Both the position numbers and the translations under genes were made by a program. Shown here piece after piece: positions 889-64,000 of a stretch of 64,000 nt of DNA; position 1 is the first letter of the stretch, and every line of letters begins with the position of its first letter. The DNA comes from Takakia lepidozioides (Eukaryota > Plantae > Bryophyta). Where the stretch lies: assembly GCA_030704615.1 (NCBI GenBank), contig CM060733.1, positions 9,982,001 through 10,046,000 of the forward strand, written 5' to 3'. The notes below the pieces were generated by a model that made no database searches, was not told the DNA's origin, and worked only from the letters and a program-made list of their open reading frames with translations.

Positions 889-3800
889 CTACATCCTCAT
901 GCTGGGACCATCAGATATCCTTTCAAAGTTGCCACTGTGGCTATCAAGGATCCCTGTTCCAAAAGCCTCATCGTATCCACTTGACGAATACCAACGAAGC
1001 ATCGTGGCCTTATAGTCATCGTCCAAGCCTGCTTCTGGGCTACAATCAAGGCCTGCATCCTGCTTGTCACCCTCTGATCCCACCGCTTCCGGAGTACCAC
1101 GAAGGACCACAATTTCCAAGTCACTATCCCAATCAGTTTCCTTTCTACCCCAATGGTCCTGAATCTGCATGTCACTATCTGGTTCCACTTTCCGAGCATC
1201 ATTATCGACCCCATCTTGGAGATCACTTTTTAACTCGACTTTCAGTGTAGCACCAACTTCTGTTGAATCTGACTCAAGGACCATGCCTTGGAAGCTGCTA
1301 ATTAAATCCTCTTCAAGAGTACCACCAAGGTTCCCAATCCGCACGTCACTCTCTGATACAGTTCCCAGAGCACCACCAAGGAACTTGACTTCAAGGTCAC
1401 TCAGTGAATCCGATGCCTGACTGTGAGGGAATCTCACTTGGGCAGCACACTTCGGATTCACTTCCTCAATCCCACGAGGGATCTGAGCTTGCAAGTCATC
1501 ATTTTGATTCCCCTTTCTGCAGGTTTTCAAGGTTTCTTCCATATCAGCTTCGCCTTCACTACTTGTTAAGTCACCCTCTGATGATATTCCTTGAACTGTT
1601 ACAAAATCTCCCTCCTTTGAGTTTGGTGTCGAGCTCTCCCCAGGAACAGAGGATTCATCAGTTCTCTTTCTATCCGAAACAAAGGCTCCAAAACAAGCGA
1701 TGCTCTTTAGATCGGATGTTTCTGATCCACCCAGACAGCCAGTTGTCTGAGGAGGTTCCATGTCTTCCTCCTTTGATCTGCTGTCCACTGAACTAGAAGG
1801 GCTCCCTACCTCCGTTGCAAATGGAATCCTACCAGAAGATTGTACACAGGGCTTAAAGGCAGGTTTACCCTCAGGAACAGCCCGGCGAAAGTCTAACCCC
1901 TTGGATTGTACCATGAGATCACTCGGGCTCCCTACCTCCGTTGCAAATGGAATCCTACCAGAAGATTGTACACAGGGCTTAAAGGCAGGTTTACCCTCAG
2001 GAACAGCCCGGCGAAAGTCTAACCCCTTGGATTGTACCATGAGATCACTCGGATATAGCATTCTGTTACTGCCAGCTGCCACTTCCACCCTCACAAGATC
2101 CGACATGACTGCCATCATATCTCCAAGGATCACAAAGCCTGCTGTTTTGTAATCCAAGACATACCCAAACCGACGCAAGAACTCTGGTTTCAACATTGCT
2201 TGAAGGTAACCACTCCTATTGAGAGGTAGCACAACGTGCAACAGCACCCTGCAATCCAATATTGACTTCCTTACAAATGCATCAGCTGACAATCTATAGC
2301 CTATGTCATGTCTTACCGAAGTAAGAGAGCTACCCCTATTTTTCAGGGCCGGATGGAGCACACAAACGCCTGGCCGGGGATAATCCATCCGTATAACTTC
2401 AGGAAATCGATTAATAAGCTCATAAAGATTCTTGAAGCCAAGATATTTATGGTCCAGAGGAGCACCACATGCCCACTGGAAGTCTTTGGGAACAAGTCTT
2501 ATGTCGTAGCCATTGGGCACTTTTTCCATCATATAGACAAGCAAAGCCCTGAGCTTGTTCATGATATCCAGGGGATTGAATGGGCTCACTAAAGCCTCAA
2601 ACACTGCGGCATCTGAGACCTCCTTCCCATTCATCTGTGAACTTTTCACAATTATTGTATTCGAAACAAGCATAGACTGGAGGGGAGTACTAATGTCAGG
2701 TGTACTCTTTGGCTGGCTCCCTACCTGTTGCTTGCGAGGAGGTGGGAAGTCTGCCGCCCTGTGTCTTGCTGGAAACAGCAAATGTAATCCCTTCCGCGGA
2801 TTCTCGATCCGCACCACATCATCAAAGGATTGCGAGACGAGATCCATGAGCTTTAAAGATCCTAGTGTATGTTGGTCAAGGCGGATGCCGGTTGCAATTT
2901 CGAAGTCCCGGGGGATAAGACTTATATCATACCCCCTCTGGCCTCTGTCAGTTGCCAAACTTACGAATTGGACAAGCCAAGTTCGTAGGCTTTTCAGAAT
3001 ATTTTTTGCAATATTATTGGACGGACCCAGAGTTTCCAGGTGTCCGTTTGCTGCACGCTTTGACTCAGCGACACCCACCACATTTAGGTTGTGAGGAATG
3101 GGCAGCAAAGGGCTGTCTGGCATCCTGGCAGAAACAGAAACCTGGGGACACGGTATAGGTGAGGTAAGAAACAAATTGGAAAACTCAGAGATATTCGCAA
3201 GGCTGACAGACAAAGGCGCCCACGTGCTTGGGGATGCAGGGTGCAGCCATCCCATCACTGAGATAGCAAGCTGCAGTATTTTGAAAATTTCTCCCAATAC
3301 CATCCCAGACAAATGAGCACTTCCACTCTTACGTAATATCTGCGCTGCCTCATACCTGTAAACCACAGCCATGCCCACAGCTCAGAAGCAAGGATTTGAA
3401 GACATGTGAATTCATCGCTAAAGAAGATGGGAAAACTTGCAGGCATCGGCAAGTGACAGCAGCTGCTGTATTGTAGAAAATGTTTAACCAGCACACACTG
3501 GATCAATCTATAAGCGACAACATACACAGCTCAGTCTGCAAAGATCTGAAGACATGCCAACTGCTTGCTAAAAAGGATTATGGGAAAAATGCTTCCAGGC
3601 ATAGCCGATGAAGCATCATTGCGCTGAAATCACACTAAAAAATGTTTCCTTATAAAGCGTACACTGAATCCATGCAAGAAAAACAATCCCATACTTGGAA
3701 GGATACGTACTGTGTGTGGGAGGCTGTCAATGACCGCTGGCCTTCAGCACCACGGACAAAATCGTGGAAAGTATGCCACAATTCTCGAGGGTAGTCGTTG

Positions 3801-5946
3801 CGTTGACTGCTTGGGTCTATGCACTGCCACAGCTCAGTAGAGCGAGGAAAGAAGACCTTTGATGACCCTACAATGACAGAAGCCAGTTCCCCAAGTTCTA
3901 CACCTGCAATCAAGGCAGGGGCCAGATCGAAGCCATAACCACACTGCTTTTCGTGGAACTGAGCACACGCCTGCAAATTGGCCTCTGTTGGCATTATCAT
4001 CTCCCGCTTTAAAGTCTCTAATGCACGACAGATCAGGCTCTGGTATGAAGAAAACAGTTGCTGACGTTGGGTTGCCGGCTGCTCTACAGGAAACAAGTGG
4101 GGCAGCAGCATGTGATGCAAAGCACCTTCTTGCCTCAAAGTTGGTCCTCTTTTCTCCATAAACTGTGAGGTACTTTTCTCGGTTGGGATGGCTTCAGCCA
4201 CCACGATATCAAGTAGAGGTCTCAAAGCAGTCGGATGCTCTTGATGTATCACGTTGGGCTTTGCTATAGCCAGCCTCGAGTGAGTGAGAAAAGTGGGGTC
4301 CACATCAGAATTGGACCTGTTGTCAGCTACTGGTACATCATGTCTCCTTGCAGTGGGCATCACACATGCACCATTGTCAGGCTTGGCTCCCACAGCAACA
4401 AAGGGCCCAGGCCCTGAACCCCTATGCTCCACTTTATCATTGATAGAGGAAGGTCTCACTTCAGGCACATAGGACTCTACATTGCCAGTCAATGGCTGCA
4501 GCTGGGGGATGAACTCGACTGAGGAAGCTACAGCTGCCTGTGAAGCTGGTTCATGACGCCTTTGTTGTACTGGGAAAGTTGCAGCTGCAACAGGAGGCTG
4601 CCCACTGATCATGTTATTAGACAGTTGACCCTTTCCATTATTGCTTGCACCTACAGATGACAAGCTCTTATTGCGTGGGTGATCTGGTGGAGCCTCCCAT
4701 CTAGTTTCAGACTGTACATCCCTGTCTTTACCGGGTGTGGGACCGTTATAGCTTGTGTGTACAGATACCCGCCCATTCACATACTCAGCTGTACTACTGG
4801 AATATTCAGGTGCCAAGACCCTATGGTTGGAGTGATCCCAAGAAGAAAGAGATTGCTCTGATCGAACTTCTGGCAAAGCTGTAGACTCAGTGTTTACGCC
4901 TTCACCACGTGCTAGGCTAGCCCAAAACCACACACTTGATGCCACACCAAGCAGCGATGGTGATACATAGAGATTAAGAGGCCGTGCCAGCAAAATATTG
5001 TAGGTTCTCATTCGAAGTCGATGAAGCGCATTGGCAAAGTCACGATCCCCTGATATGAGAAGAAAGTGTGCTGGAGGGGGGTTGTCAAGTGCCCAAAATA
5101 TCATGTCCACCAATATTGCCTTATCACTTGCATCCTTCCTGCCTGTCAACCCCACATGCTTTCTTGGTGAACACCTCGTAGTAAATGGGTGATAATAGAA
5201 AGAATTTTTCATTCAGTCTGCAAGCTGGCACACCTATTACAACATCTCAAGGCTACTCTTCCAGTCTTTCACCATTTTGGCTCCATTGTCGATGCAAGCA
5301 AGGCCTGAATAGGGATGGCTGACAACTATTTGAAAACCCTGCCCACATTCATGCCCTAACTCAAATTACAAGATACAGCTTGATTACACATCTGCATTCA
5401 CTGCAAAAGCACCTGGCCTGGAATGAACTTCCACGTGGCATGGAGAAACTGATATTTTCTGAAGAATTCCACGTGTATTACATGTATCCTCGGGAGCATT
5501 GAGCTAATCTGTCCCCCAGAATTACTAGATGAACAACATACACAGTCGAACTTTGCATTTGAAACCAGGGAACCCTACAATAAGCCAGTGAGAGAAGAAT
5601 AAACAACACAGGTCATCCCAACTGAATCACAACATTGCTGCTTCAAAGCCACTACGGGCTTCAGGCCAGAAAAACACGAGGGCCTACGCAATTACAAACC
5701 TGATGGAACATGGTGCAAGTTGATTCCTGTGCTGGATAGTGCTCTTTGAATGTTCCTGGACAGTAGCGTTGTGTCACAATATGCAGAGATAGAAATTGGC
5801 CCTTTGAAATTGGCCTTACTGAGCGCTGATCCCACGTTCCGGGCAATAACATGGGGGTCAAGCCCTGCAGGCACCTGGCAATTTTCAATGTCCCACCAGA
5901 CAGATATCTTTGCTGTACTCGCTGCAGAGCTGCTACCTTCTGCCAT
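889..5946 (-). CDS. NYN-domain endoribonuclease with three LOTUS/OST-HTH domains (MARF1/limkain-b1-like plant family), ~1381 aa; exons 5946-5700, 5142-3711, 3355-889
   Basis: NYN motifs VWWDIENC, KDASDKAILVDM and LLISGDRDF are present. GT-AG junctions keep frame (4146 nt total). Three LOTUS-like units (GYDISLIPRDF..LDQHTLG, GYDIRLVPKDF..LDHKYLGF, GYLQAMLKPEF..LDYKTAGF) precede an acidic tail. Confidence 0.9.
1801..2052. repeat. Perfect 126-bp tandem duplication inside the last exon of the NYN-LOTUS gene (42 aa x2)
   Basis: 1801-1926 is identical to 1927-2052; the peptide PSDLMVQSKG...FATEVGS occurs twice in frame. Confidence 0.95.
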
Positions 5947-6633
5947 CTTGCCTTCCTTCCTGCCCACCCCCTAGGTTTATGTACAACGCGCTCCTACCTT
6001 GTTTCCACGCTCCGATTAAACAGAAACGGGTACAAACAGACGCTTCTTCAAGTCTTCTCAACAAGGGACAGATGCGAACCTGCAACCTGCCAGCACAAGC
6101 ACAAATTCAATCAACCCATTACTCAACCTCCATTCCCGCAACGGATCAGTATGAGGCCAAAGATGCCGTCGAAAACATCCCCCCACTAGAAATTCAACCA
6201 GTTACTAGAAAGACCCGTATGTTGCCCTAATTGAGGAGGAATGCTCCACCTTTCAACGGTTACTTGAAGCCTAAGATCAGTCTAGGGAGGTCGCGGCGGG
6301 CGACCCAACGTTGGCGTTAAGCACCAAACATGTCTGATCCACTCTACTCCCGCAACTGCTCCGTCTCCGACAAGAGAGCGCGTGCGATCGGCATACACCT
6401 CCATGCCCGCACACGACATGCCTTATAAACTACTCGCTCTCTCTGCATCGCTCTCCGCTTTTTCTTTAAACCCTAGCTTGCTTCTTCTTGCCTTCTTCCC
6501 CCCTATAACAACTTACGCGCCTTTTGCCGCTTTTCTTTTCTTTTCTTTTCTTTCCTTTTTCTTTTTTCTTTTCTCTTCTTTCTTTTTTTTATCAGAAAAA
6601 GGATACTTTTCCTTTTTCCGTTAACAGACTATA

Positions 6634-6705
6634 ACGTGGTAGATCAGTTAGATAGTGCACTAACGGGCACCGCAATGGTTTTGGGCTCAAATCCGGCTAC
6701 CGCGT
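6634..6705 (+). other. Degenerate tRNA-like / SINE-head sequence
   Basis: 72 nt. The ends pair (ACGTGGTAG / CTACCGCGT), with an A-box-like TAGATCAGTTAG, a B-box-like GGCTCAAATCC and a GTGC/GCAC stem. Confidence 0.5.
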
Positions 6706-6927
6706 CTTGTGTGGTATGGTTTGGTGTCTCCGGTATGCTTCATGGCCTAATAAGAAAAGGGGTTAATTTTTTACCAAGGGCCTGAATCCAAGACGCACTC
6801 CTAATATGGAGTATCATTGTGACAGACTCGCAATACATTACTATGGATAGACAAAGTAAAATAAGAGTCCCGACAGATTTCTCTACGAGTACAATCGGTT
6901 ACCCCTTTTATTTAACGAAAAAAGAAA

Positions 6928-7004
6928 GTCGGTACATAGATAAGTTGGACGGTGAACAGCATGCCAGCTTATAGTGATCCTGGGTTCAAATAACCAGTGC
7001 TGCC
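6928..7004 (+). other. Second degenerate tRNA-like / SINE-head sequence
   Basis: A-box-like TAGATAAGTTGG and B-box-like GGTTCAAATAAC at tRNA spacing; termini weakly complementary. Confidence 0.35.
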
Positions 7005-7794
7005 TTGTCGGGTGTGTTGTTGTTGTCTCCACGGGTGGCCAGTCAGGAGGTTATTTACGTCTGACACAAATTATGTAAAGGGCCTGATGTGGCTGCCTTT
7101 TCGGGGCAGCAACGGACGGTCGCCAGTCAACGCACTGTGGGCAGGGGCATACGCCGCACGCGCTATCAACGCAGGGTTGACCCCAAGTTCCGGGAACAGA
7201 TTATTTACTCAGGGAGCGGATGAAACTTGGGCAAGGAGAACCCTAACTGACCCATAAGTAGGGTTATTATAGAAAACAACAGGCATGCCAACAATGCAAA
7301 AGGCTTCAAAATCAGCTCTTTTTCGTTTTTTACTATTTTTTTGAAGAAGGCAACGGAGGCCGAGAATAGATTAAGGGCATGGAATAACAGCGGGAACGTG
7401 AACTAAGGCTTACAGAGCAACAACCCAATTGTATAAGCAGAGTTAAAAACACCTGTTAAATGTATCACTCTCTTGTAGCGGACTACATTCCTCAACCAGT
7501 CACCCCCCCCCCCCCCCCCGGCTCCCAAACCACCTGACTTCCAGAGGACATCCCATGTGAGAGTTGCCCCTACCAGATGCAAGGTCAAACTTATTATTGC
7601 CATACCAGAAAAACAGTCATGCAAGGTATCTGTATGCACATGCCTTATAGCCAGCCTTCCCAATCAGTGTCTTAGGGAGAAGCCAGTAAATTGAAGAAAT
7701 GGATGGAGAATCAGCCCAAACAGATGAATGATGGCTGGAGAGCTTCGGAGTTTTCTTGTGAGCTTAGCAAACTCTGATCCCACATGTTCCGTGG

Positions 7795-10700
7795 TCACAG
7801 CAGTCTTCCCCGTATTATTGCCTCCGCTTTCCGAACTTCCTTGATTGCTCCAATCACAAATACCTGGTGGGTGAGTATTTGCTCAGTTAGTGAATGTAAG
7901 AGTGTAGGAAAATACATACCCAATTAGCTATTGGAAAAGGTGAAGTTCTTGTCACTTGTGTTGGGCTAGTAGCACTTAGGCTGTGGGATTCTTATATCCT
8001 TTGAATTAAGAAGTGACAGCTGAATGTGCTGGGTTCAACTTAAAGCACTAGTTGGTTGCAACAAGAACATCAGGAATGGAGCATCAAATACACAGTAAAA
8101 TTTACCTTGTCTGGAGGGCCTTTAGTGCCTCCCATGAAGATGTTAGCCCTGAAAATCAATCCACAGAGCGGACCTGTTAGTATCGGGAGGAGTGAAACAA
8201 TGTGGACCGATGCATACAAGTGATGAATGCACTAGAAAATCATTTCAGAAAGAGGGAGAACTACCGGCAGGATTGCTTGATTGACTGGATTGAAGAACCT
8301 TTTTTCCCAATAATGAGCCCCATTTTCCCGTTCGGTACATCCACCACCGCCAGCACCTCCTCTTCTGGCACCTCTTCTACTGTCACATTGTCTGCCCCCA
8401 ACAACCCAAGATCAGATAGAGAGCCACACCACAGTTTGGAGGTATGGTCACCCGCAACAGAGCTACTTTCATCAAAGCACACGCTAAAACCTGTTCTGAT
8501 TTCCGTCCAAGCTATGCAGTGACATCAACATGGATACCTGATGACCATATTTCCCAACTGATCTAGTCTATCCCCACTGGTTGGTGAACCCATGCCAGGC
8601 ATGCTGTCCAAGTTAGAGCTTCCCTTTCCTATGTTCTTGAAACTGTCGTATGCTCTGAGCTAAATAGTCAATGCAGAAATATCATCCAAAGAACGGTCTA
8701 CGTAACCTTGAGTGCCATGTGGATTTCAGTATCTGTAGTTTTAGAGAGGATGCCGAGACAGACCTGCAAGAGTGGGAAGGGCTGGCCAGTCAGAAAAGTC
8801 AGTGCCAGCACAATAGCAGCGGCAGTAAAGAGAGCTGCGCACACTGAGGCGCCACAGTAAGAGCTGGGGCAGCTGGGCTACCATGCAGTGATGAATACGT
8901 AGAAGGAAGCGAACATCGTCAGCTGCCACACGTCTCATCATTTCATTCCATGGTCTGTGTGCCCAGAATTCTGGGTCCTGGATCATCAGGTGGAAGTGTT
9001 AGTCTACGGTTGACTCCTTGTAACACAGATATTGAAGTTCCACTCACATCTACACACACATAATCAATCTCGGTCAGTATATTCTGGCTCAATTATAGGT
9101 TAAATCGATTGAGTCATGGTCTGTAGGAATTACTCAGATGGGAGAAATTTAATGACTGTGATACTCCCAGAGACAAATAAAGCACTGACCTTCTTCAATA
9201 GCCCCCGAACCTCTTCCTTCTCGTCATACACCACCCCTGTTTACAAACATACATAAAACTTCATAATGGCTACATTCCCTAAAGACAAAAGGGGACTAAA
9301 AACTAAAAACCACTCTTTGGAGCCACACCTTGGCAAACCAAATAAACCACATGATATGTCTGCATGGCCCATCCCATCATGCTGAACAACTACCTTGGTT
9401 AATTGATAAGGCTTCAGAGCCAACTGTGACAAGACCGCATGGAGTCAGAATCTGAGCTGTTTACTAAGAACACAAAACCATCAATCACAAGGTATATACG
9501 AAGTTTTCATGCATTTAGGAAGTGGGGAAGAAAGAAAGAGAGATGGCATACCACAATAGCGCTCATCTGCCAGGAGATCTACGAAAGAGATGTTAGCATC
9601 TGGCACCCACTTCTTGCCGTGCTGCTCCTCCAGCAGCGCGTACGCAATCTGTCATAATCAACCAATCATCACAACCTTCAATCCAGAGAAGTGCTGTCAA
9701 TATCTGCAGGTCCGAGATGACCACTTCTCTGTCCACTACTGCGATATTAAATTACCACATGAGGCTCCATCCCTTCATATGAATCTCCAAACAAAGTGAC
9801 GGAAAAAGTGTCATGGTGAGTTGCGAAATGATTGAGATATGCCTGATTTCTTAGGCTTTGAAGAATTCACAGGTACTAAGACCGCAGGGCTCTTGGGAGT
9901 TCTTCCTACTTCAGCTATTTACATTCATAGTTATTGAATCATGATACATCCCACTGTCAATTGCTCTCTGTGGTCACTTGAACCAGCAAGAAACCATCTC
10001 AGTTGCAGTCCTTAAGTAAAACGTGGACACACATCACGGGTGAGGACCTTGCCAGCTATCACAAATATGCTGGGTCCCTGATCAGGACATGCCAATCCTT
10101 CCTACTTCAGCTATCTGTCATCCGCAATTGGTCACATCATTGATCCCACCTGAACCAGCAAGAAAGCTCAAGAACACCATTCCACTTGCAGGTCTGAAGA
10201 CAAATGTGGAGATTGTGATTGCAAGAGAGAAGCAGAAGACTGCACCTGAGTGTCAAATACATTGTGCAACTTGATTCCAAACTGAAAGTACAAAGCCTGC
10301 AACATGCAAGAGAAGACAAGACCTATCATTAGAGACAGTGTGGAGAAAGACACCTTGACCATGGAGTCCCCAGCATTAATTCTTCTTAGCTGCATATCTA
10401 GATTTCCTAAAGAGAGGTTTACTCTTCACCATGTTGTTCGTTGCCAGCAGCCAAAGCTCTCGTCCCTTGGACCTTGCAGTCCCTCAGGAGTGGGTTACTT
10501 GATCCAAAGCTCTTTGAAGCTGCAGATCACAAAATTAAATGCAAATCTGGTAGAATTATTCCAGGAGTTGAACAAGTAGTCCATGTCGACTGTATGGGCA
10601 ACCCCACAATTCAGGGACGTGCATAATCAGAACTGGAGATTGGAATTGCTAAATAAAATGGAATTTGAAGAAAGGAACAGTAAAGCTGGAGGAGGAAGGC

Positions 10701-54261: not shown

Positions 54262-56070
54262 GTGTTCAGACTAGCAGCAACACTCTGCGAGAGTGGGGAG
54301 GTCACTTCATCTTCTGCGGAGTTACTGGAAGGTGTAGTGGCAGAGGGATCCTCGGATTTGAGGGTCAAGACTGCCACGGCTGCGCCATGGCAAGCTGCAG
54401 CTGCCAGGTTGACGGAGCTACCAGCTAGGCCAGCCTTTGAGCACGCCATGGTGACACCTGGAGTTGTCTTGTTAGACAACCAGGGAGGCATTTTCACTTT
54501 GAGTGGACCGGCAGGCAAGAAGAAGTACCGGCCACTGCGGGTCTTGTTGGACTCAGGAGCTCAGCCACTGATGTTGGGCAGAGCTGCTATTGCAGGTTTG
54601 GGCCTCATGGAGGCGGATATGGAGCCTTGTCCTTTCCAGATACAGACATCTCTGGGAGGATCAGAGCAGGCTCGGGGCATGACACGGCGTGAGTTGGCCA
54701 TTAGACTATAGCCGGATCACCCTACAGATGGCTCAGCGATGCGAGCCAAGGCCATTGTGACAGATGCGGTCTCTTACAATGTCCTCGTTGGTGGGGCAGT
54801 GTTATACCCCATGGGCTTCACCCTGGACTTTTGGGAGGAATCAGCATCCTACAGGCCTAGCTGGCAGTCAGGGGATGGTCGTCGTGCACAGCTCCCTGTG
54901 ACATTCATTGGGGGTATTGTGGCTGCCCAACAGGGCAAGATGCCAACACTAGCCGCCTTTACGGCTGCAGTTAGTTGGCCTGGAGAGTTGCTGGCAAGCT
55001 ATGCCCATGCAAAGGATGTGCCACCTCCAGCAGAGCAGGATGACATGCATGGTACGGCGGAGTTGCCTGCCATGGTTGCTCACACTCCATTATGGGGTAC
55101 GAGCAAGGATTTGCAGCAGACTGCTGATGGACGGGTACAACAAGCCTGGGTAGAGGCCTTCGTACCGTCAGGAGAAGAGGAGAGTGCGGTAATTGCACCA
55201 GGACCACCTCAGTTGTCGCCATTGGACACCACACCTCTTGTGTGGCAGTGCCCGGATGAAGGCATATGCTTTCTGGACTTGTTTGGCGGGATCAACACTG
55301 GATTGGCTGCAGTACTGCAGGCAGGTGTACGAGTTCGACGTTACCTGTATGTGGAGAGGGATGAGACTGCACGACGCGTCTCACTACGCCATGTTGCTCA
55401 ATTGGTACAGCAGTACCCTGATTTGTTGCCAGTGTCTGCAGTTCGTGGATACCAACAAGCCTTGCCAGCAGACATTTCGTTGCTGGGGGCGCAGGATTTG
55501 GAGCGGGTTGGCTCCATTGATCTGGTAGTGGCAGGTTGGCCTTGCCAAGGGCATTCATCAGCCGGGCATGGCAATGGATTGCGAGACTCGAGGACGGGTC
55601 TGTTTTGGGAGATGGTGCGGGTTTTGCGCCACTTGCAGCTTCATCAAGTTGTATCTCCAGCATACATCTTGGAGAATGTGCCACTGATGGGTGATTCTCG
55701 GGCCAGGGTGATGGCCAGTGTGCATCAAGTCCAGTCGTGGCTTGGGTCAGCAGTGTTGCTGGATGCAACTGCAGTGGGGTCACGGGCTCATCGTCCACGG
55801 CTATGGTGGACTAATTTGATGCCACCCGCACTGCTCAAACGTGCATTTGATGGGGTGCAACGGCCAGCACACCTCACAGTGGATAGCATTTTGGACACAG
55901 GGAGGCAGTCTCAACGTGTAAGACACGATGACCGTTCGCATTTGGCAGTGGTCAACAGGGTGGGTCAACCACGAGCAGCATTACCTACACTGCTCAGCTT
56001 CCCATGCTTTTCGGGATGGTGGACCTGGCCTCTTGTGGGATAGCCAGTTGCAACAATTAGTGGAGCCCAA
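54262..56070 (+). mobile_element. Retroelement remnant encoding a retropepsin aspartic protease fused in-frame to a C5-cytosine DNA methyltransferase
   Basis: VLLDSGAQPL...YNVLVG protease with one in-frame TAG (54709-54711). MTase motifs follow: I LDLFGG, II YVERD, IV AGWPCQG, VI ILENV, VIII HRPRLWW. Frameshift near 56000; the match ends at LVEPN. Confidence 0.88.
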
Positions 56071-56613
56071 TTGGATTTATGGGAGTACACAAATGTTTTT
56101 GGTATATGGTAAGAGTAATAGTTTAGGGTACTAAGTGTCCGGCTTAAGCCTATGGAAGGGTTAAGGGAAGGGTAAAACGAAGGGTAAGGATTTAGAGGTG
56201 ATGGTAGAGGTATAAATGGACAAACAAATATAGAATACTCGCACTCACTAGAACGAGACATTGCAAAAAAACATTTAGACCGGATTGGAAAAGAAAGAAT
56301 CTAGGGGTTGTGCCAGCATTTGTTTTTTTGGGTGCATTGTCTGGTTTGTAAGCCAGAATCCCCCATGTCACGAATATATGTAGATGAACAGAATGTACAA
56401 CAGTGCAGAGTCCAACACGGCAGAAAGAAAATAGATGAACGTCCACTGCCCACTCGAGGTTCATTGCGACAGAAAAAGAAGACAGGAAGGATCACCCAAA
56501 GCAAACACGAAGGGAAAGAAGCATAAAGAAATTTTTATATCTTAAAATGAAAGACCGGAAATAACCTCAACATTTAGTCCATGGATGGAAAATGGTTCGC
56601 AAGAAGGAAACCT

Positions 56614-59600
56614 TCAGGTATCTGGCTGAAGGTTAGCAACCTCCAAATTCGCGCGCGCCTTCACTGATTCCACCGCTGTAATTCTCTTGGTGCTATTTCT
56701 TGTCGTATTTTTTCGTGGCGGCATTGTCCACACGACATTGTTCACATGGATCCATTGAGCAGGATCTGACGGGTTGTACTCCCAAACTTTTGACCAACAG
56801 TCCATGTACCTCTCAAAGTCTGAGGGGTTACCTCCTTTCTTCGGTCTCCGCCACTCCACCTTCACTTTCTTAAAATTAGGATCTTCCCTTTCTCGGATGA
56901 CATCTGAAATTGCCATTCCCATCGAGACTGGGCACGTCGTTGGGTCATGATGGCGAACGAGCAAAAAAAACCCTTTCTCAATATCCTTGAACGGATTCAA
57001 GGGTATCCTTGGACGCTCACACCTAGGGCCACAGTAAGGTTCTGGAACTTCATCCTCATCTTCCATATCTTCCAATATCTGTGGCTGGATGCCATCCCTC
57101 CGATGGTTTGAGGACCAATTTGTTTTCGGCCAAAATCCCTCAAGAAGCTGAATACGATCCAGAATGTCCTGCATTGGCTTATCAAGTTCGGCGAGAATAT
57201 TTCCCCAGTATTGGTCATATTGTTCCATCACACCCCGGTAATGATCGTCAAGCAACATTCCTTTGGTCCAAAAATCTCTGTATTTCTTAATACCAATTTT
57301 TATGAATGACTGTTTTTCTGAGGAGTCGTCCCCGACTCCCCATATCGGTCTTATTGGAACGACATCTGGTTCTCCTTCAGGGAGATATGGAGTCCCATCA
57401 AGATTGGACTTCCACATCTTAACGTTGGAGTTTGTAGGAAACCACTCCGAATCAGTAGCTGACTTCTTGTACTTCATAACGGGCCAGCCATCCGCATCCT
57501 TAATAAATCGAAAGACGTACATCTCTGAGATCCCGACCAAAGCCTCATTTCCATCATGAATACAACCCTTAACAAACTTTTTGAAGTCGGGAACCTCCTG
57601 TGTGATTTGAGGAATGAATTGCATATCTTGGGAGATCATGAATGACCTCATCAAATCCAGAAGAATATAGGTACTGCGTTCCTTTAGCTTCTTTGAGAGA
57701 TAGCTAAAGAATCCGTCAATATCCTCATGGGGTTGCCCGACCATGAGAAAACCAAGCTGGATCTCTTCAAAGACATCTTTGGCAGTGATGAGGGATAAGA
57801 AAACAATCATCCATCTGTTCTTATTGTCCTTGGAGGAGTTGTCCATCTGCAAATAAAGTCGTCTAGGAAGTGGTCGAGCACCACGTTTATCGTGCGGCCT
57901 ACAGGGTTTCAGAGCCTCCAAACATCTCGATTTACCTCTCATGAGCATTTCAAAAAAATCATTTTGAACTTCAGTGTCGAAAATGTTCCTGGATTCCCGA
58001 CATGTTGGCTTTTCTAGTTGGCGTAGGCACTGAGCCAGCGACCCAATTGTGAAGTTTGAATTGTCTTTCCAGAACTCAAGGGAAAATTGAGCGTAAGCTC
58101 CATCTCCATGTCCGTGCGTAACCATTCTTGTCAATGAGACAGACAACTGACCCAATCCGGAGACCATCTTGTTCGTCGTCTGTAGCCTCGGAATAGCCGT
58201 TTTCCTATGATTCATCTTATCATGAATAATACATAGGAACTCCTCCGGAACCATAACGGACTCATTCCTCTAGCTATGGTACAACCTTCTGCATGACTCT
58301 TGATGCCTCAAGTGCAAATCAAGCATCCGCTTATGTGCGACCTGTTCGGAACTCATCTTAATCGACTTCTTGATGAAGTCCTTGAACATCTCACATTCTG
58401 TGCACTTAGCAAAGGTGCTTCATGTTTTCCGAACCTCCACGTTAGGAAATATTCGATTGCATATACGGCTTATAGCTGGCTGCGAGACTCCTTTCAAACC
58501 GAGCAGTCTGTTTGTCTGCACCCCAACTCCCCAACAATGTCAACGTCCACTGGGCAGTGGAGGTTCTACAAAGTGGAAGAACAAGAAATCATGATGGCAT
58601 CAAAAAGAATAAAATCATCCACAGTATTTTGAAAAACGAAAGGGGACAACGAATAAAAGTCACCTCATTGGACTCCTCTCGAATTCTCTTCCAGTTCATT
58701 TCGGGTGGCAAAATTCTCAAAGTATCCCAACGTCCCTCTCCAATTCAACGTGTTTTGTGAGGCATAAGGTCAGTATTGGCATTGATAATGGACATAATGT
58801 TCCCCTCTGCCTGGAGTGTCCCTGGTCGCGGCCGCTTGACGCCACGATTTCCGTGGAAAGATGACAAACAACCCTCTTTACTGAGCTTTTTGTACTCCAT
58901 GTACGTTGACCTTCCAATTCCGTGTATTATCCACCATGCTTTCTCACAAACATCAACACCTTCTATCGTAACATACGACCTGCGCGATGACCCATCCATA
59001 ATGTGAAGTCGTTTTGAAACATTCAATCCAAGTTCTCTCCTCTCATCGAATGACAAACCCCAAAATGCAGTACGAATTGCCAAGGTTTTTCTCCAATCAA
59101 AATACTGGCAGCACTGAAGCTTGCAACAAGGTTTGCTGCCCACCGAACTCACTTCATCCAAAGTAAGATTTTTCTTGCACTTTTTTTAGTCCTCCATATT
59201 GGATGGTTTTATCTTCCTAGTAAAATGCCTGTATGCTGCTTTCAATACGCCTGTATCATGGTCGTCATTCTCCATGTCACTGCATGATCGTAGGAAATTT
59301 TCGAGATCAACGGAGAGTATCCGGCCATTTTCAAGAAGTCTTGTTTTTGTTAACGGCCATTTCACAATCGACATCAGTGAACCGGACTCTCCAAAGATTG
59401 TTCTAGTGACCAAAACCCCAACATCATCCTCTCCGAGTTTGTCATTCAGAATGATCTCGTTAGGAATGCATGCTTGAATTCGGCCTTTGAACATGGCGTT
59501 TCTGTCCTCCCCAAGAAGAAGACACTGCAAGTTTCTCCAACATTCTCTCCCCAGACCTGCAGGCAGATCCCCCCCAGTCTCACCGTTGGACGGAATATCA

Positions 59601-59933
59601 TTGCTTTCAGTGCTTTGTCCTTGATAATCACTACCTTCTGTGATGGAATGACATCCTGGGTTTCTCGGGGATGATGAATCCACAGTTTAATGCGTGCGAA
59701 CACATGACACGTCCCACACAACTGGAGTCCCAATCGCCTCCTTCAATGTGTCAGCATCCATGTGTCGATAAGGCAGAGGACAGGAGCCGAATGCGTCATC
59801 ACAAAAGATCAAGGTAACTGAAATGGTGGACGAACACAAGTGGTGTCCGTGGCAAGTTCCCCAGAAACATTCAGGCAATCTCCTGAGGCAACAACTGAAG
59901 GAGATCCAGGAAGCGACAGAAACACCCTTTGGC
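56614..59933 (-). pseudogene. Sola-like DDD transposase pseudogene; exons 59933-58664 and 58515-56614
   Basis: CCKLQCC..AFW, VCEKAW, FAKCTEC, IIHDKM, LYLQMDNSSKDNKN and FLMVGQPHEDIDGFFS motifs. Five in-frame stops are explicable as transitions, and one frameshift is inferred near 59865. GT-AG intron at 58663-58516. Confidence 0.78.
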
Positions 59934-62625
59934 CTACTTGGAACCCCATGAAGTTAGTAACCTCCACTGGGCAGTGGAGGTCCAGTAAAATCCTATTACT
60001 GGACTGAAGATTAACTTAAGGAAAGAATGACTTGCCACCGAAAGGAGAAACTTTAAGTATAACTTTTTTGACGGTTTTGAATGAGAAAACAATATGGATT
60101 GAAAAAGTAAAATCAATGTTTGGATCTACACTGGGACTGATAAAAAACAATTGGAATTAAATTGGAGTATGAGGGCGGAGTATAGACTACATCTATCGGA
60201 ACTGTCAGATGAAGTCACAATTGCCAACCTCCACTGGGCAGTGGAGGTTGGATGATATCTGTTGATGAAATAAACCACATGGATGAACAATGGATAATGA
60301 AGAAGCCCTTTGTAGATGACAAAGTGATTCTATGGATGGATGAATAATAATGTGGCGACTGCCCAGTGGAGGTTTGGGAGTAACTTTAGACAAACAAAAG
60401 CAAGTTTAGCTGGTGCACATGGAGAGTACACAAAAAATTGAGTATCATACTATCCTACGTGAGAAATGTGCAGTTGACACATGAGACTAAGGAAGCAGAG
60501 AGAGACTCAGAGGCTGCTTCAGAAGTACCCTATGGGTAGAGTGGTGCAGGACAGGCAAAGAGGTACACGTTGTCCAGAGAGGTGCATGATGTCCAGAGAG
60601 GTGCGTGAGAGAAAAGAAGCAAGTGAGAGGTTCAAAGTGGGAAGTTGGTATTGTGTGGATTCAGACGTTATATAGAGGTGACACGTAACTTTCATCTTTG
60701 AATCGCTCCAATGGCAGTGTGGTATGCTTTCTCTCCCGGATCGATTGTGGCCACCGTGGATTAAGGCGGAATCGAACGGCTTATTTCAACTCGCGAAATC
60801 TCGGCTTCATTGAAAGTGTGCACAATTTTCCATTTATTGACAACAGCCATTGTCACATTAATTATGGAACAAACGATAACGGCCGTGATCAGACTGAATT
60901 CTATCGTACTTGTACGTTAGTAGGACTACAAGTCTGGCATCATTATCGTGCGGCTCTGACAGCAGACTCTGGAATAAGCGTGAAGGATGTCGATTCTGAC
61001 AAGTGGCCTGGAGAAATGAAGTCAGGCGGCTAATCGCCACAACTAATTCGGGACTGCACATTAACAATCGATCATTATAATTAACTGGGAGGAATCTGGA
61101 GGTGAACCATAAAGCACTTTGAGATTGTTCTGTTTATATTTATCGTGCTGTTACAGTGAATAAAACACTTGGGCAGGGCGGGGCATTACATGTCGGCGCA
61201 TTGCATTGGACAGCGAGGGCGGTGCATTACAGGTGTGCGGAATGCTCTGTCGTGCCTTGCTTGCTTGCACATGTTTAATGTAGGGATGGACCCCTCGTGT
61301 CGGGTATCCCTCGATAAATGGGCAGTCCCTGTGGCTCTGGACCTTAAATCGAGGAATGCCCGACACGAGGGGCCATCTACTATCCTTAAAGCCGTATGTC
61401 TGTCAGGGAATATTGACGCCTGGCGGCTAACAGCCGAAAGTAATTGTGGACGGCTCAATATGAGACAATGATTATACAGTGTGACGAATCCGTAGGTACA
61501 GCGTTGTGTCCTCTGGCAGATTGACGACTGCCTAGGCGTGTCACGTGGGTGGTCACATGTGCGTTTGGGGCGTGGGTTAAGGTTTGTTGGCTTCGAATCT
61601 ATAAGGACTAATCTACAATAGAAATCTTCGAACCTAATTCGTCCAAAATATACTAAGGAACTTCTCGCACTATATTCAGACGATTCTAGATTATATACCC
61701 AAGAACTACAGAATGCTCCTTCTTATCTCTCTGAGTGTATCAGGCGAATAGTCTGGAGGGGTATATTTTGGGGATCTGGTGATACTATCAGGAGACGCAA
61801 GGGAGTATCCTGGAGATCCGGAGACGTCCAGTAGTTCCATGACTCCCCCGCTCGTTTCAGTGTCCAGGAGGAAGTTTGGAGGATAATATTTTTCGGATCC
61901 TGATGTGGATTCAGGAGATGCCCGGAGATGCTGGATATCCAAAAACGGTCACTTGTATTGCAGCCAATGTGTCTGGGGAATAGTATGAAGGGGTGTATGT
62001 CGGATAATCTTGGGAGTGGGCAGGAGATCCGTTGGTATCATTGTTTACATGAACGCTTTCTCTTATTTCTGCCAGGGTATCCTTACAGATGACTTGAGGT
62101 GTATTGCTCGGAGATTCGCATGCGTTCCGCGGGGATTCTACAGTCACATTTTTGTCATTGACAGACACTTTGTTCGGCTCGGTAGACCCCCAACTGAATT
62201 TTTCATCTAGTTCCGAAACACCATGTTTTTGATCTGGACGGTCCGCTTCCATCACGTCTACCGAACACCGTCTTTTGCTCCAATTTAATCTGGCTGTCTT
62301 GTACGCATCGTCAGACACCGGTTCCCCACCCTCGTTCTTCTTTCTCATTGACATAAAAACTAATCAGAGTGTGTAACTGGCTGACCCAAAGAAATATCGA
62401 ACCTCCACTGGGTAGTGGAGGTTCCCAATTATCGTATCCCAGTCTCATTGGAAAGTATATGTCACACTTACAATGTCACACATATGATTCCATCACTCGT
62501 TCCCACATCGTCTCAAACTGATTTCAATTTTCCCGTAATTATCCGATTTCGTCCTTACTTTAAAAAAATGTCTTTCAGCTTCCACATACAGAATTCACGC
62601 GAACCTCCACTGGGCAGTGGAGGTT
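58542..62625. repeat. Six copies of the 24-bp palindrome AACCTCCACTG-GG-CAGTGGAGGTT (58542, 59959, 60226, partial inverted copy at 60358, 62400, 62602)
   Basis: Direct reading: 11-bp inverted arms, with 0-1 mismatch per full copy. Confidence 0.95.
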
Positions 62626-64000
62626 CCAGTTTTTGGTTGCTCATGTGCATGACATGGGTCTACGAATACTCTACTCTGGCCTGCACGAAGCCTACTGTTA
62701 GCATATGTCTACTGTAGAATACAAGTAGACTAGGCTATCGTGGTTTTTCAGAATTGCCGAATTCAACATAATTGGATAAGAAATGAAAATTTCCATTCAG
62801 AATCGAATTTGAATGGGAAGAAATGCATCAACTAACGCTTGATTTGGGGATCAAGAAAACGGTTGAGAAATAAACATCTGGGCATTTCCGAAACCACTGT
62901 CCTCAATAAACCACCACAATGAACAAAACAAGCAATACAACCAGCACGGTAATTTCCCGCCACCCTAAACCATTACCCTAATCGACCAGAACAAGCACAC
63001 ATAAACCCAATTGCACACAAAACCACCACACAAAACCACCATACAAACCATCGGTGAATTGAAAAACAACAGTGAAGCAATGACTCAGGAATGCACTGAA
63101 GCACAGAATGGAGCAGGAGTGAAATGAATTGACAGAGAATGAAACAGCATTGAAGCAAACAACAAAGCAAACAATGAAACAGAAACCTAATGTGCACTAA
63201 AGCACGGACTGAAGCACGGACTGAAGCACTGAAGACGGTGCAGTGCAGCAGAGAATGAACCAAGATCAAAACGAATTGAATCTTGAACATGCCACATGAA
63301 TCGAGAGCGGGCCAACACAAAACTGAGAACAGGCCAACACATGAATTCAGAACAGGCTAACACAAAACGTGAAACAGAAGACGAAAAGAGGGAGTTTTTA
63401 ATTCTGTATTTGCTTGTGCCGGCCATTTTGGTGCCCCTGCAACCACAGTCCTTCGTTTGATACTCTCTTCCGCACCTCCGCCTGCCGGTAATTGCACTGT
63501 GCTCTCGCCTCTACACTCGTCAATCTCCACTCGCCACTGTCCGGTCTCTCCTCCCCGCTCTTCAAATTTTGCCTATTTCACTCTCTCACCTTTCACCCTC
63601 TCCTCTCTCTGCACTCGGCCAAGTCTACTCTTTCTCTCCACGCTCCAGTGTCCAGTCGCTGCAAAACGAGCTCCAAAACTCTTCTCTTTCACGCTCTCCT
63701 CTCTCAACTGTTAAGCTTTCACTCGCGCAGCGCTTACGCGTAGAAAATGGGAAGCCCAAAGGTTGGGCTCAAAGAGCGCACCCCTTATAAGCGACCTTCA
63801 AGGATGATCTGAACCATCGTCTCCGTCCGAAATCGACTATCTAATAAATTTGTGTTTGGTTGTAACAGAAGACATCCTACACCACCAGATTGCGTCCCAG
63901 GATTGATTGGAGATATTTGTGGCGCATTCGTATGCCGAAAGTCCTCACATTTCAAAACTGAGCATATCGCTATTTTTGAGCTTAACCCAGAGGTGACAGA

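Follow-up and report, generated by a model that had tools for sequence, protein, structure and literature searches.

A 64,000-nucleotide stretch of the genome of the bryophyte Takakia lepidozioides (assembly GCA_030704615.1, contig CM060733.1, positions 9,982,001 to 10,046,000 of the forward strand; this whole stretch is called the window below, and positions are counted from its first letter) contains a decayed transposon within which a 24-nt palindrome, able to form a hairpin, is repeated several times. We think that these palindromes are probably family-specific, putative DNA binding sites of a large cut-and-paste transposon, which is Sola-like by the label of an earlier reading of the DNA (the original prediction), while our own domain evidence is limited to Pfam DUF7869 (E 5e-35 for the minus-strand open reading frame (ORF) 58254–56614). 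Comparison with related elements shows, as far as their sequences can tell, that placement of the palindromes at three stations recurs across lineages: in a cluster upstream of the transposase gene, in its single conserved intron and shortly after its stop codon.

Palindromes in the window and in related elements

On the minus strand the 24-mer consists of two 11-nt arms around a CC centre, and in most copies the symmetry reaches 26 nt. The five full, same-orientation copies described originally are all confirmed, with 0–1 mismatch each, and together with a degenerate copy (h6) and a half copy, all seven are found inside the one transposon (Table 1). The motif has six matches in the window, where dinucleotide shuffles expect none; all of them are within 56.4–62.6 kb, and no palindrome is found outside the transposon in the remaining 57 kb.

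For the relatives we used the DNA around homologous transposases from Ceratodon purpureus (L002), a Logan contig (L003), JGI metagenome contigs (L004–L009), ENA contigs (L010–L013) and an NCBI assembly (L014). Lineage-specific palindromes were found in L002, L003, L004, L010, L011 (two kinds), L012, L013 and L014. Ten types of element can be told apart by their palindromes, which are uniform inside an element and different between lineages, with a length of 17–22 nt in the relatives. Changes in the arms between close lineages are symmetric, as in CGGGAG/CTCCCG, CTGGAG/CTCCAG and CGTGAG/CTCACG.

The distribution of the palindromes around the gene is similar from one lineage to another. Upstream of the transposase ORF the relatives contain a cluster or an array of 3–8 palindromes, and h2 of the window corresponds to the promoter-proximal ones. 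After the stop codon one or more palindromes follow within 0–150 nt in most lineages, and h6 is their equivalent. The conserved coding sequence, about 21 kb, contains just two of the 77 palindromes. Tandem arrays are also found outside any gene (L002 8190–8710 and L014 3298–3513), with both orientations occurring.

The closest relative of the window element is L014, with 57% identity in exon B of the transposase. Its palindromes at 1794–1973 and 3298–3513 have a half-site, AGTGGGGAGG, that resembles CAGTGGAGG of the window; the halves are joined head-to-head in L014 and tail-to-tail in the window. Right after the stop codon of L014 there is an array of five palindromes with a 49-nt period. In Ceratodon (L002 2420–6493, with minus-strand ORFs at 2727–7945) each of the three gaps between the large opposite-strand ORFs of the NIF/FCP1-like gene contains a palindrome, one of which precedes CCTAAC and a pyrimidine tract.

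The conserved intron and the question of splicing

The original prediction placed one copy, h1, in an intron (58663–58516) whose removal restores the transposase frame, and this is borne out by homology. The borders are GT..AG, and homologues from a large protein collection align contiguously to 59860–58661 and then to 58515–56614, the two frames being different (exons A and B were searched separately, not as one joined protein). In the window and in seven relatives the same codon boundary (exon A ...NE, exon B TN...) is interrupted by a GT..CAG intron of 126–360 nt, and the intron position is, to judge from these alignments, old and shared. The homologous intron carries the lineage's own palindrome in all eight of the intron-bearing lineages, with three copies in L014; the joint probability of this under random placement in each element's non-coding part is roughly 7e-4. 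More telling than this estimate is that the intronic palindrome has changed along with the palindrome of the lineage, which would not be expected of a relic; it is also usually among the best-preserved copies of the element. The ORF of a more remote clade (L003 and L011 copy 1, ~34% identity) is uninterrupted at the intron site, and palindromes are found there only upstream of the ORF.

Could the palindromes be introner-like or miniature mobile sequences, inserted independently into the element and then spliced out or tolerated, as was also proposed originally? They are short and scattered, and their surroundings are unrelated, as had been claimed: the copies aligned with 50-nt flanks share no sequence past the palindrome. 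Breakpoints between genomic copies of the transposon are found beside them, at 60255/60346, 60375/60484, 62602 and 62636, where contigs of other copies diverge or skip 90–108 nt, and the palindromes may be rearrangement points. However, their borders show no target-site duplications, no copies are found beyond the transposon in the window, and an exact scan of 241 million metagenome records for the 22-nt core gave a single match at chance level (L001 2351–2372), which sits in an unrelated intron-rich eukaryotic gene region. Moreover, the intron position is shared, and eight lineages have different palindromes at the same codon boundary; independent insertion would therefore have to be repeated at one spot. 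We consider this explanation highly improbable.

Another explanation is an RNA splicing device, in which a pre-mRNA hairpin near the branch point would control the use of the 3′ splice site and so tune the amount of full-length transposase. Several features of the window are consistent with it. The part of the intron before the palindrome (98 nt) is 50% T, with ...TTTGTAG at its end, while the palindrome is followed by a G-rich tail of 24 nt without a pyrimidine tract, and then by the in-frame acceptor. The alternative AG at 58566, just before the hairpin, is out of frame and would end the protein after exon A, and full-length transposase requires the weak-looking AG at 58516. In the window's family such a device could choose between the strong-looking 58566, giving the exon A product only, and the weak in-frame 58516. 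YURAY-like motifs adjoin h1 (TTGAC) and h2 (ACTAAC, containing the CTAAC noted originally), the first downstream AG is found at 17–22 nt in four of five copies, and the presence of a palindrome in the homologous intron of every intron-bearing lineage can also be counted in favour. In yeast introns, hairpins between the branch point and the 3′ splice site shorten the effective distance, and the hairpin of the window intron is similarly located between the pyrimidine tract and the in-frame acceptor.

However, the seven related introns do not share this arrangement, and the palindrome, unlike the yeast hairpins, is present also in non-transcribed arrays. The pair of acceptors 58566/58516 is specific to the window's family and absent in the relatives, which have ordinary pyrimidine tracts after the palindrome. 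In the eight homologous introns the palindrome-to-acceptor distance is 24, 36, 43, 46, 88, 111, 116 and 183 nt, and the relative position of the palindrome within the intron varies from 0.16 to 0.74. The majority of palindromes are outside introns (most are upstream of the gene or after the stop), in arrays and in both orientations, and lineage specificity would be unnecessary for a spliceosomal signal.

The observation that five copies end 24, 23, 22, 17 and 21 nt before an AG is literally true but could not be confirmed as meaningful, since an AG 17–24 nt downstream is found for 40–41% of all positions on the minus strand. The interval was also fixed only once the data were known. Over the seven copies five fit (P ~0.1), with h6 and the half copy not fitting; h1 also has an earlier AG at 13 nt. 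A fixed spacing is not found in the relatives either: the first downstream AG is at 17–24 nt for 6 of 71 palindromes, compared to a background of 12%, so these distances are the same as background. Among the acceptors predicted originally, 58516 stands, by homology only, and 59935, 60203, 62382 and 62580 are without support. The GTAAGT...CAG borders around the copy at 62400 are present as described; the acceptor of the 91-nt intron that they would define (62471–62381) is one of the unsupported ones and the intron stays a predicted one. Copy h2 is more simply read as upstream of the transposase gene, because the frame opens immediately downstream of it, with the first ATG at 59761 and conserved homology from about 59581 onwards. 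Copies h4 and h5 precede the start codon (ATG at 62354) of a small ORF that is distinct from the transposase gene and has its own stop codon.

Pairing conservation of the RNA type is not seen in the stems: mismatches on the sense strand (29 G·T, 42 A·C and 46 other) reveal no G·U bias and no wobble tolerance. As RNA, the window intron folds no better than shuffled sequences (z 0.25), an Rfam search gave no family match, and two RNA-like runs of the species (contigs only) contained no match to the region and no transcripts. A splicing device is therefore, in our opinion, quite unlikely to be what the palindromes are for, and the branch-point switch that was proposed originally is not supported as a general rule.

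The transposon and its genes

Positions of the palindromes and of the other features of the element are collected in Table 1. The window copy of the transposon is dead, with in-frame stops in exon A (59689–59687, 59188–59186 and 58747–58745) and in exon B (58422–58420 and 58272–58270). The three stops of exon A are missing from other genomic copies (59689 A>C, 59187 T>G, 58745 T>G). The family is abundant, as 801 contigs from DNA sequencing of this organism match at a likeness of at least 85%. A literature search for DUF7869 returned no paper.

Table 1. Palindromes, exons and other features of the transposon in the window (h1–h6, full-length palindrome copies; mismatches are within the 24-mer).
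Feature	Position	Strand	Description
Palindrome h5	62602..62625	-	Perfect 24-mer; 26 nt when extended (62601-62626); ~250 nt 5′ of the ATG of the 62354 ORF
Palindrome h4	62400..62423	-	1 mismatch; stops 45 nt short of the ATG at 62354
Small upstream ORF	61706..62354	-	Three SP..Y(S/T)P..YSPDTL.EIR-like repeats; own stop codon
Half palindrome	60358..60374	+	17 nt; opposite orientation; structural differences among genomic copies begin beside it
Palindrome h3	60226..60249	-	Perfect; belongs to the cluster 5′ of the transposase gene
Palindrome h2	59959..59982	-	1 mismatch; ACTAAC directly after; transposase frame opens next
Transposase exon A	58664..59950	-	Non-conserved N-terminus, then conserved Cys-rich helical region
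Transposase intron	58516..58663	-	Phase-0 GT-AG, 148 nt; by homology, removal joins frames contiguous in homologues
Palindrome h1	58542..58565	-	1 mismatch; within the conserved intron, acceptor AG 24 nt further on
Transposase exon B	56614..58515	-	DUF7869 domain; normal stop at 56616-56614
Palindrome h6	56438..56461	+	Degenerate, 3 mismatches; opposite orientation; ~150 nt past the transposase stop

The small ORF upstream of the transposase gene is frameshifted in the window copy because this copy is without 11 bases that are found at 61920 in other genomic copies. No counterpart of this ORF was found in the related elements. The sequence DADTLKEAIG near the start of the transposase ORF (~59755) resembles its repeats.

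No convincing element ends were found in the window, in L012 or in L004. An 18-nt inverted pair (56112–56129 and 62962–62979, 16 of 18 positions complementary), which includes the plant telomere-like TTTAGGG, could mark the two ends of an inner unit or could match by chance, and is doubtful as the element ends. Between the last palindrome and the end of the window there are short degenerate direct repeats (63070–63380), with CACTGAAGCA-like and GAACAGGCCAACACA-like units. A separate long hairpin at 61291–61372, with 25-nt arms that are 92% complementary and a 32-nt spacer, has no relation to the 24-mer; it may represent a short repeat that was inserted here. Immediately to the left of the transposon is a plus-strand retroelement ORF (54739–56043), in which Pfam recognises a C-5 cytosine DNA methyltransferase domain (E 1e-12).

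Element-specific sites and their possible binders

What would then recognise the palindromes? In the explanation that we favour, a protein encoded by the element, sequence-specific and probably a dimer, would bind them as double-stranded DNA. Candidate binders are the Cys-rich N-terminal part of the transposase or a ParB-like accessory protein. Site and protein would change together, so that each lineage would have its private tag, and the sites would probably serve self-recognition, either by regulating the genes of the element, by helping it to assemble for transposition, or by both. Such sites would simply be accommodated in introns and untranslated stretches, which in a short intron means close to splice signals. 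The original prediction had binding sites hidden in introns among its possibilities, and it is this one that the comparison favours: the lineage-specific palindromes avoid conserved coding sequence and are always present in the homologous intron.

Several observations weigh against this reading. The five full copies of the window are in one orientation, which is not required of a purely symmetric site, and room for a palindrome may not be the whole reason why every homologous intron contains one. A ParB domain is shown neither in the window nor in the relatives, and L004, L012 and L014 have palindromes without an accessory gene in the DNA examined. The opposite-strand ORFs upstream of the transposase in Ceratodon L002 have Pfam matches only to NIF/FCP1-like phosphatases. 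The predicted structure of exon A (L004 sequence, 9-row alignment) has a mean predicted local distance difference test score (pLDDT) of 68, and a Foldseek search with this model gave no match at E up to 0.001 and no significant DNA-binding fold. Within the same model, residues 19–97, which make up the N-terminal third of the conserved region, are predicted to form a small beta-barrel, with weak Tudor/SH3/KOW-like matches that are not reliable (E above 0.05). A 625-residue ORF of L002 has no match in Pfam, PDB or Atlas. Since the compact relatives have palindromes and no accessory gene is seen in them, the transposase is still a candidate for the binder.

The same compact relatives (L004, L012 and L014, in the DNA available) are consistent also with a narrower role, in which the palindromes would mainly be transposition sequences, that is, subterminal or internal sites bound by the transposase for synapsis, similarly to an internal enhancer, with no gene control, self-marking or accessory protein involved. 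The outermost copies of the window (56438 and 62602) form an inverted pair, whose 41-nt arms are 76% complementary, and the conserved Cys-rich helical region of exon A is typical of the DNA-binding parts of transposases. However, because the element ends were not found (in the window, L004 or L012), subterminal placement is unproven, and the palindromes follow the gene start, the intron and the stop instead of the element ends. We regard such a restricted role as possible, although on the doubtful side.

The palindromes resemble, in different respects, several known systems. Bacterial parS sites, too, are short palindromes; they recur over a replicon and are recognised by dimeric ParB, with site and protein being mutually specific. 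Here, in contrast, the host is eukaryotic, the sites surround a spliced gene and the searches showed no ParB domain. In the plant transposon En/Spm the 12-bp motifs of TnpA are multiple subterminal transposase-binding repeats that also affect the element's own expression, and in the P element the production of transposase is controlled by splicing of the third intron. The likeness to these two is that several short motifs recur within the element, that the intron parts the putative DNA-binding from the catalytic portion and that its retention would truncate the protein; the difference is in the long, perfect palindromes, which vary between lineages, with one conserved in the intron.

The general design is anticipated for algae by work from 2025. 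Sola1-1_Ec32, a giant Sola-1 transposon of Ectocarpus, has a ParB-like/DNA-methyltransferase accessory gene, divergent from the transposase, which was proposed to bind and mark the element's own DNA (Genome Biol 2025, PMC12477816). It is similarly a large cut-and-paste element, and the Ceratodon relative has the same head-to-head layout, but dispersed palindromes and an intronic site are not described for Sola1-1_Ec32, and the relatedness of the DUF7869 transposase to Sola-1 is putative. Red algal Plavaka transposons contain the ParB-like gene PAG3 and adjacent tandem inverted-repeat arrays, proposed as self-binding sites (bioRxiv 10.1101/2025.02.11.637652). Family-specific inverted repeats are thus common to Plavaka, where they are beside the ParB-like accessory gene, and to the elements studied here. 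However, the transposase superfamily is different, and the Plavaka repeats form arrays beside a gene, whereas here single sites mark the start, the intron and the stop of the transposase gene. The statement in the original prediction that no description of the pattern was known is therefore half right, given the ParB-like genes and inverted-repeat arrays already published for giant algal transposons. What is added here is the conservation of the three stations, and of the intronic one in particular.

A more particular role for the intronic palindrome can be imagined, as an internal operator between the Cys-rich N-terminal part and the catalytic DUF7869 part of the transposase. The element's own protein bound there, or a hairpin in the pre-mRNA, would decide whether transcription and splicing run on to the full-length transposase or end with a truncated N-terminal product. 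In the window's family the site is positioned between the out-of-frame acceptor 58566 and the in-frame 58516, which is the arrangement that such a switch would need. We consider this role unlikely; if it were true, the intronic operator would provide a private feedback loop for each transposon lineage.

The comparison of the three stations singles out specific sites and parts of the protein. It also advises caution: without RNA data, a short palindrome in an intron of such an element should not be taken for a splicing element. Each lineage rewrites its palindrome and yet keeps copies upstream of the transposase gene, in its single intron and after its stop codon. Palindromes that are rewritten at constant stations therefore represent strong, if indirect, evidence for a co-evolving pair of protein and site, by which a eukaryotic transposon would recognise itself.

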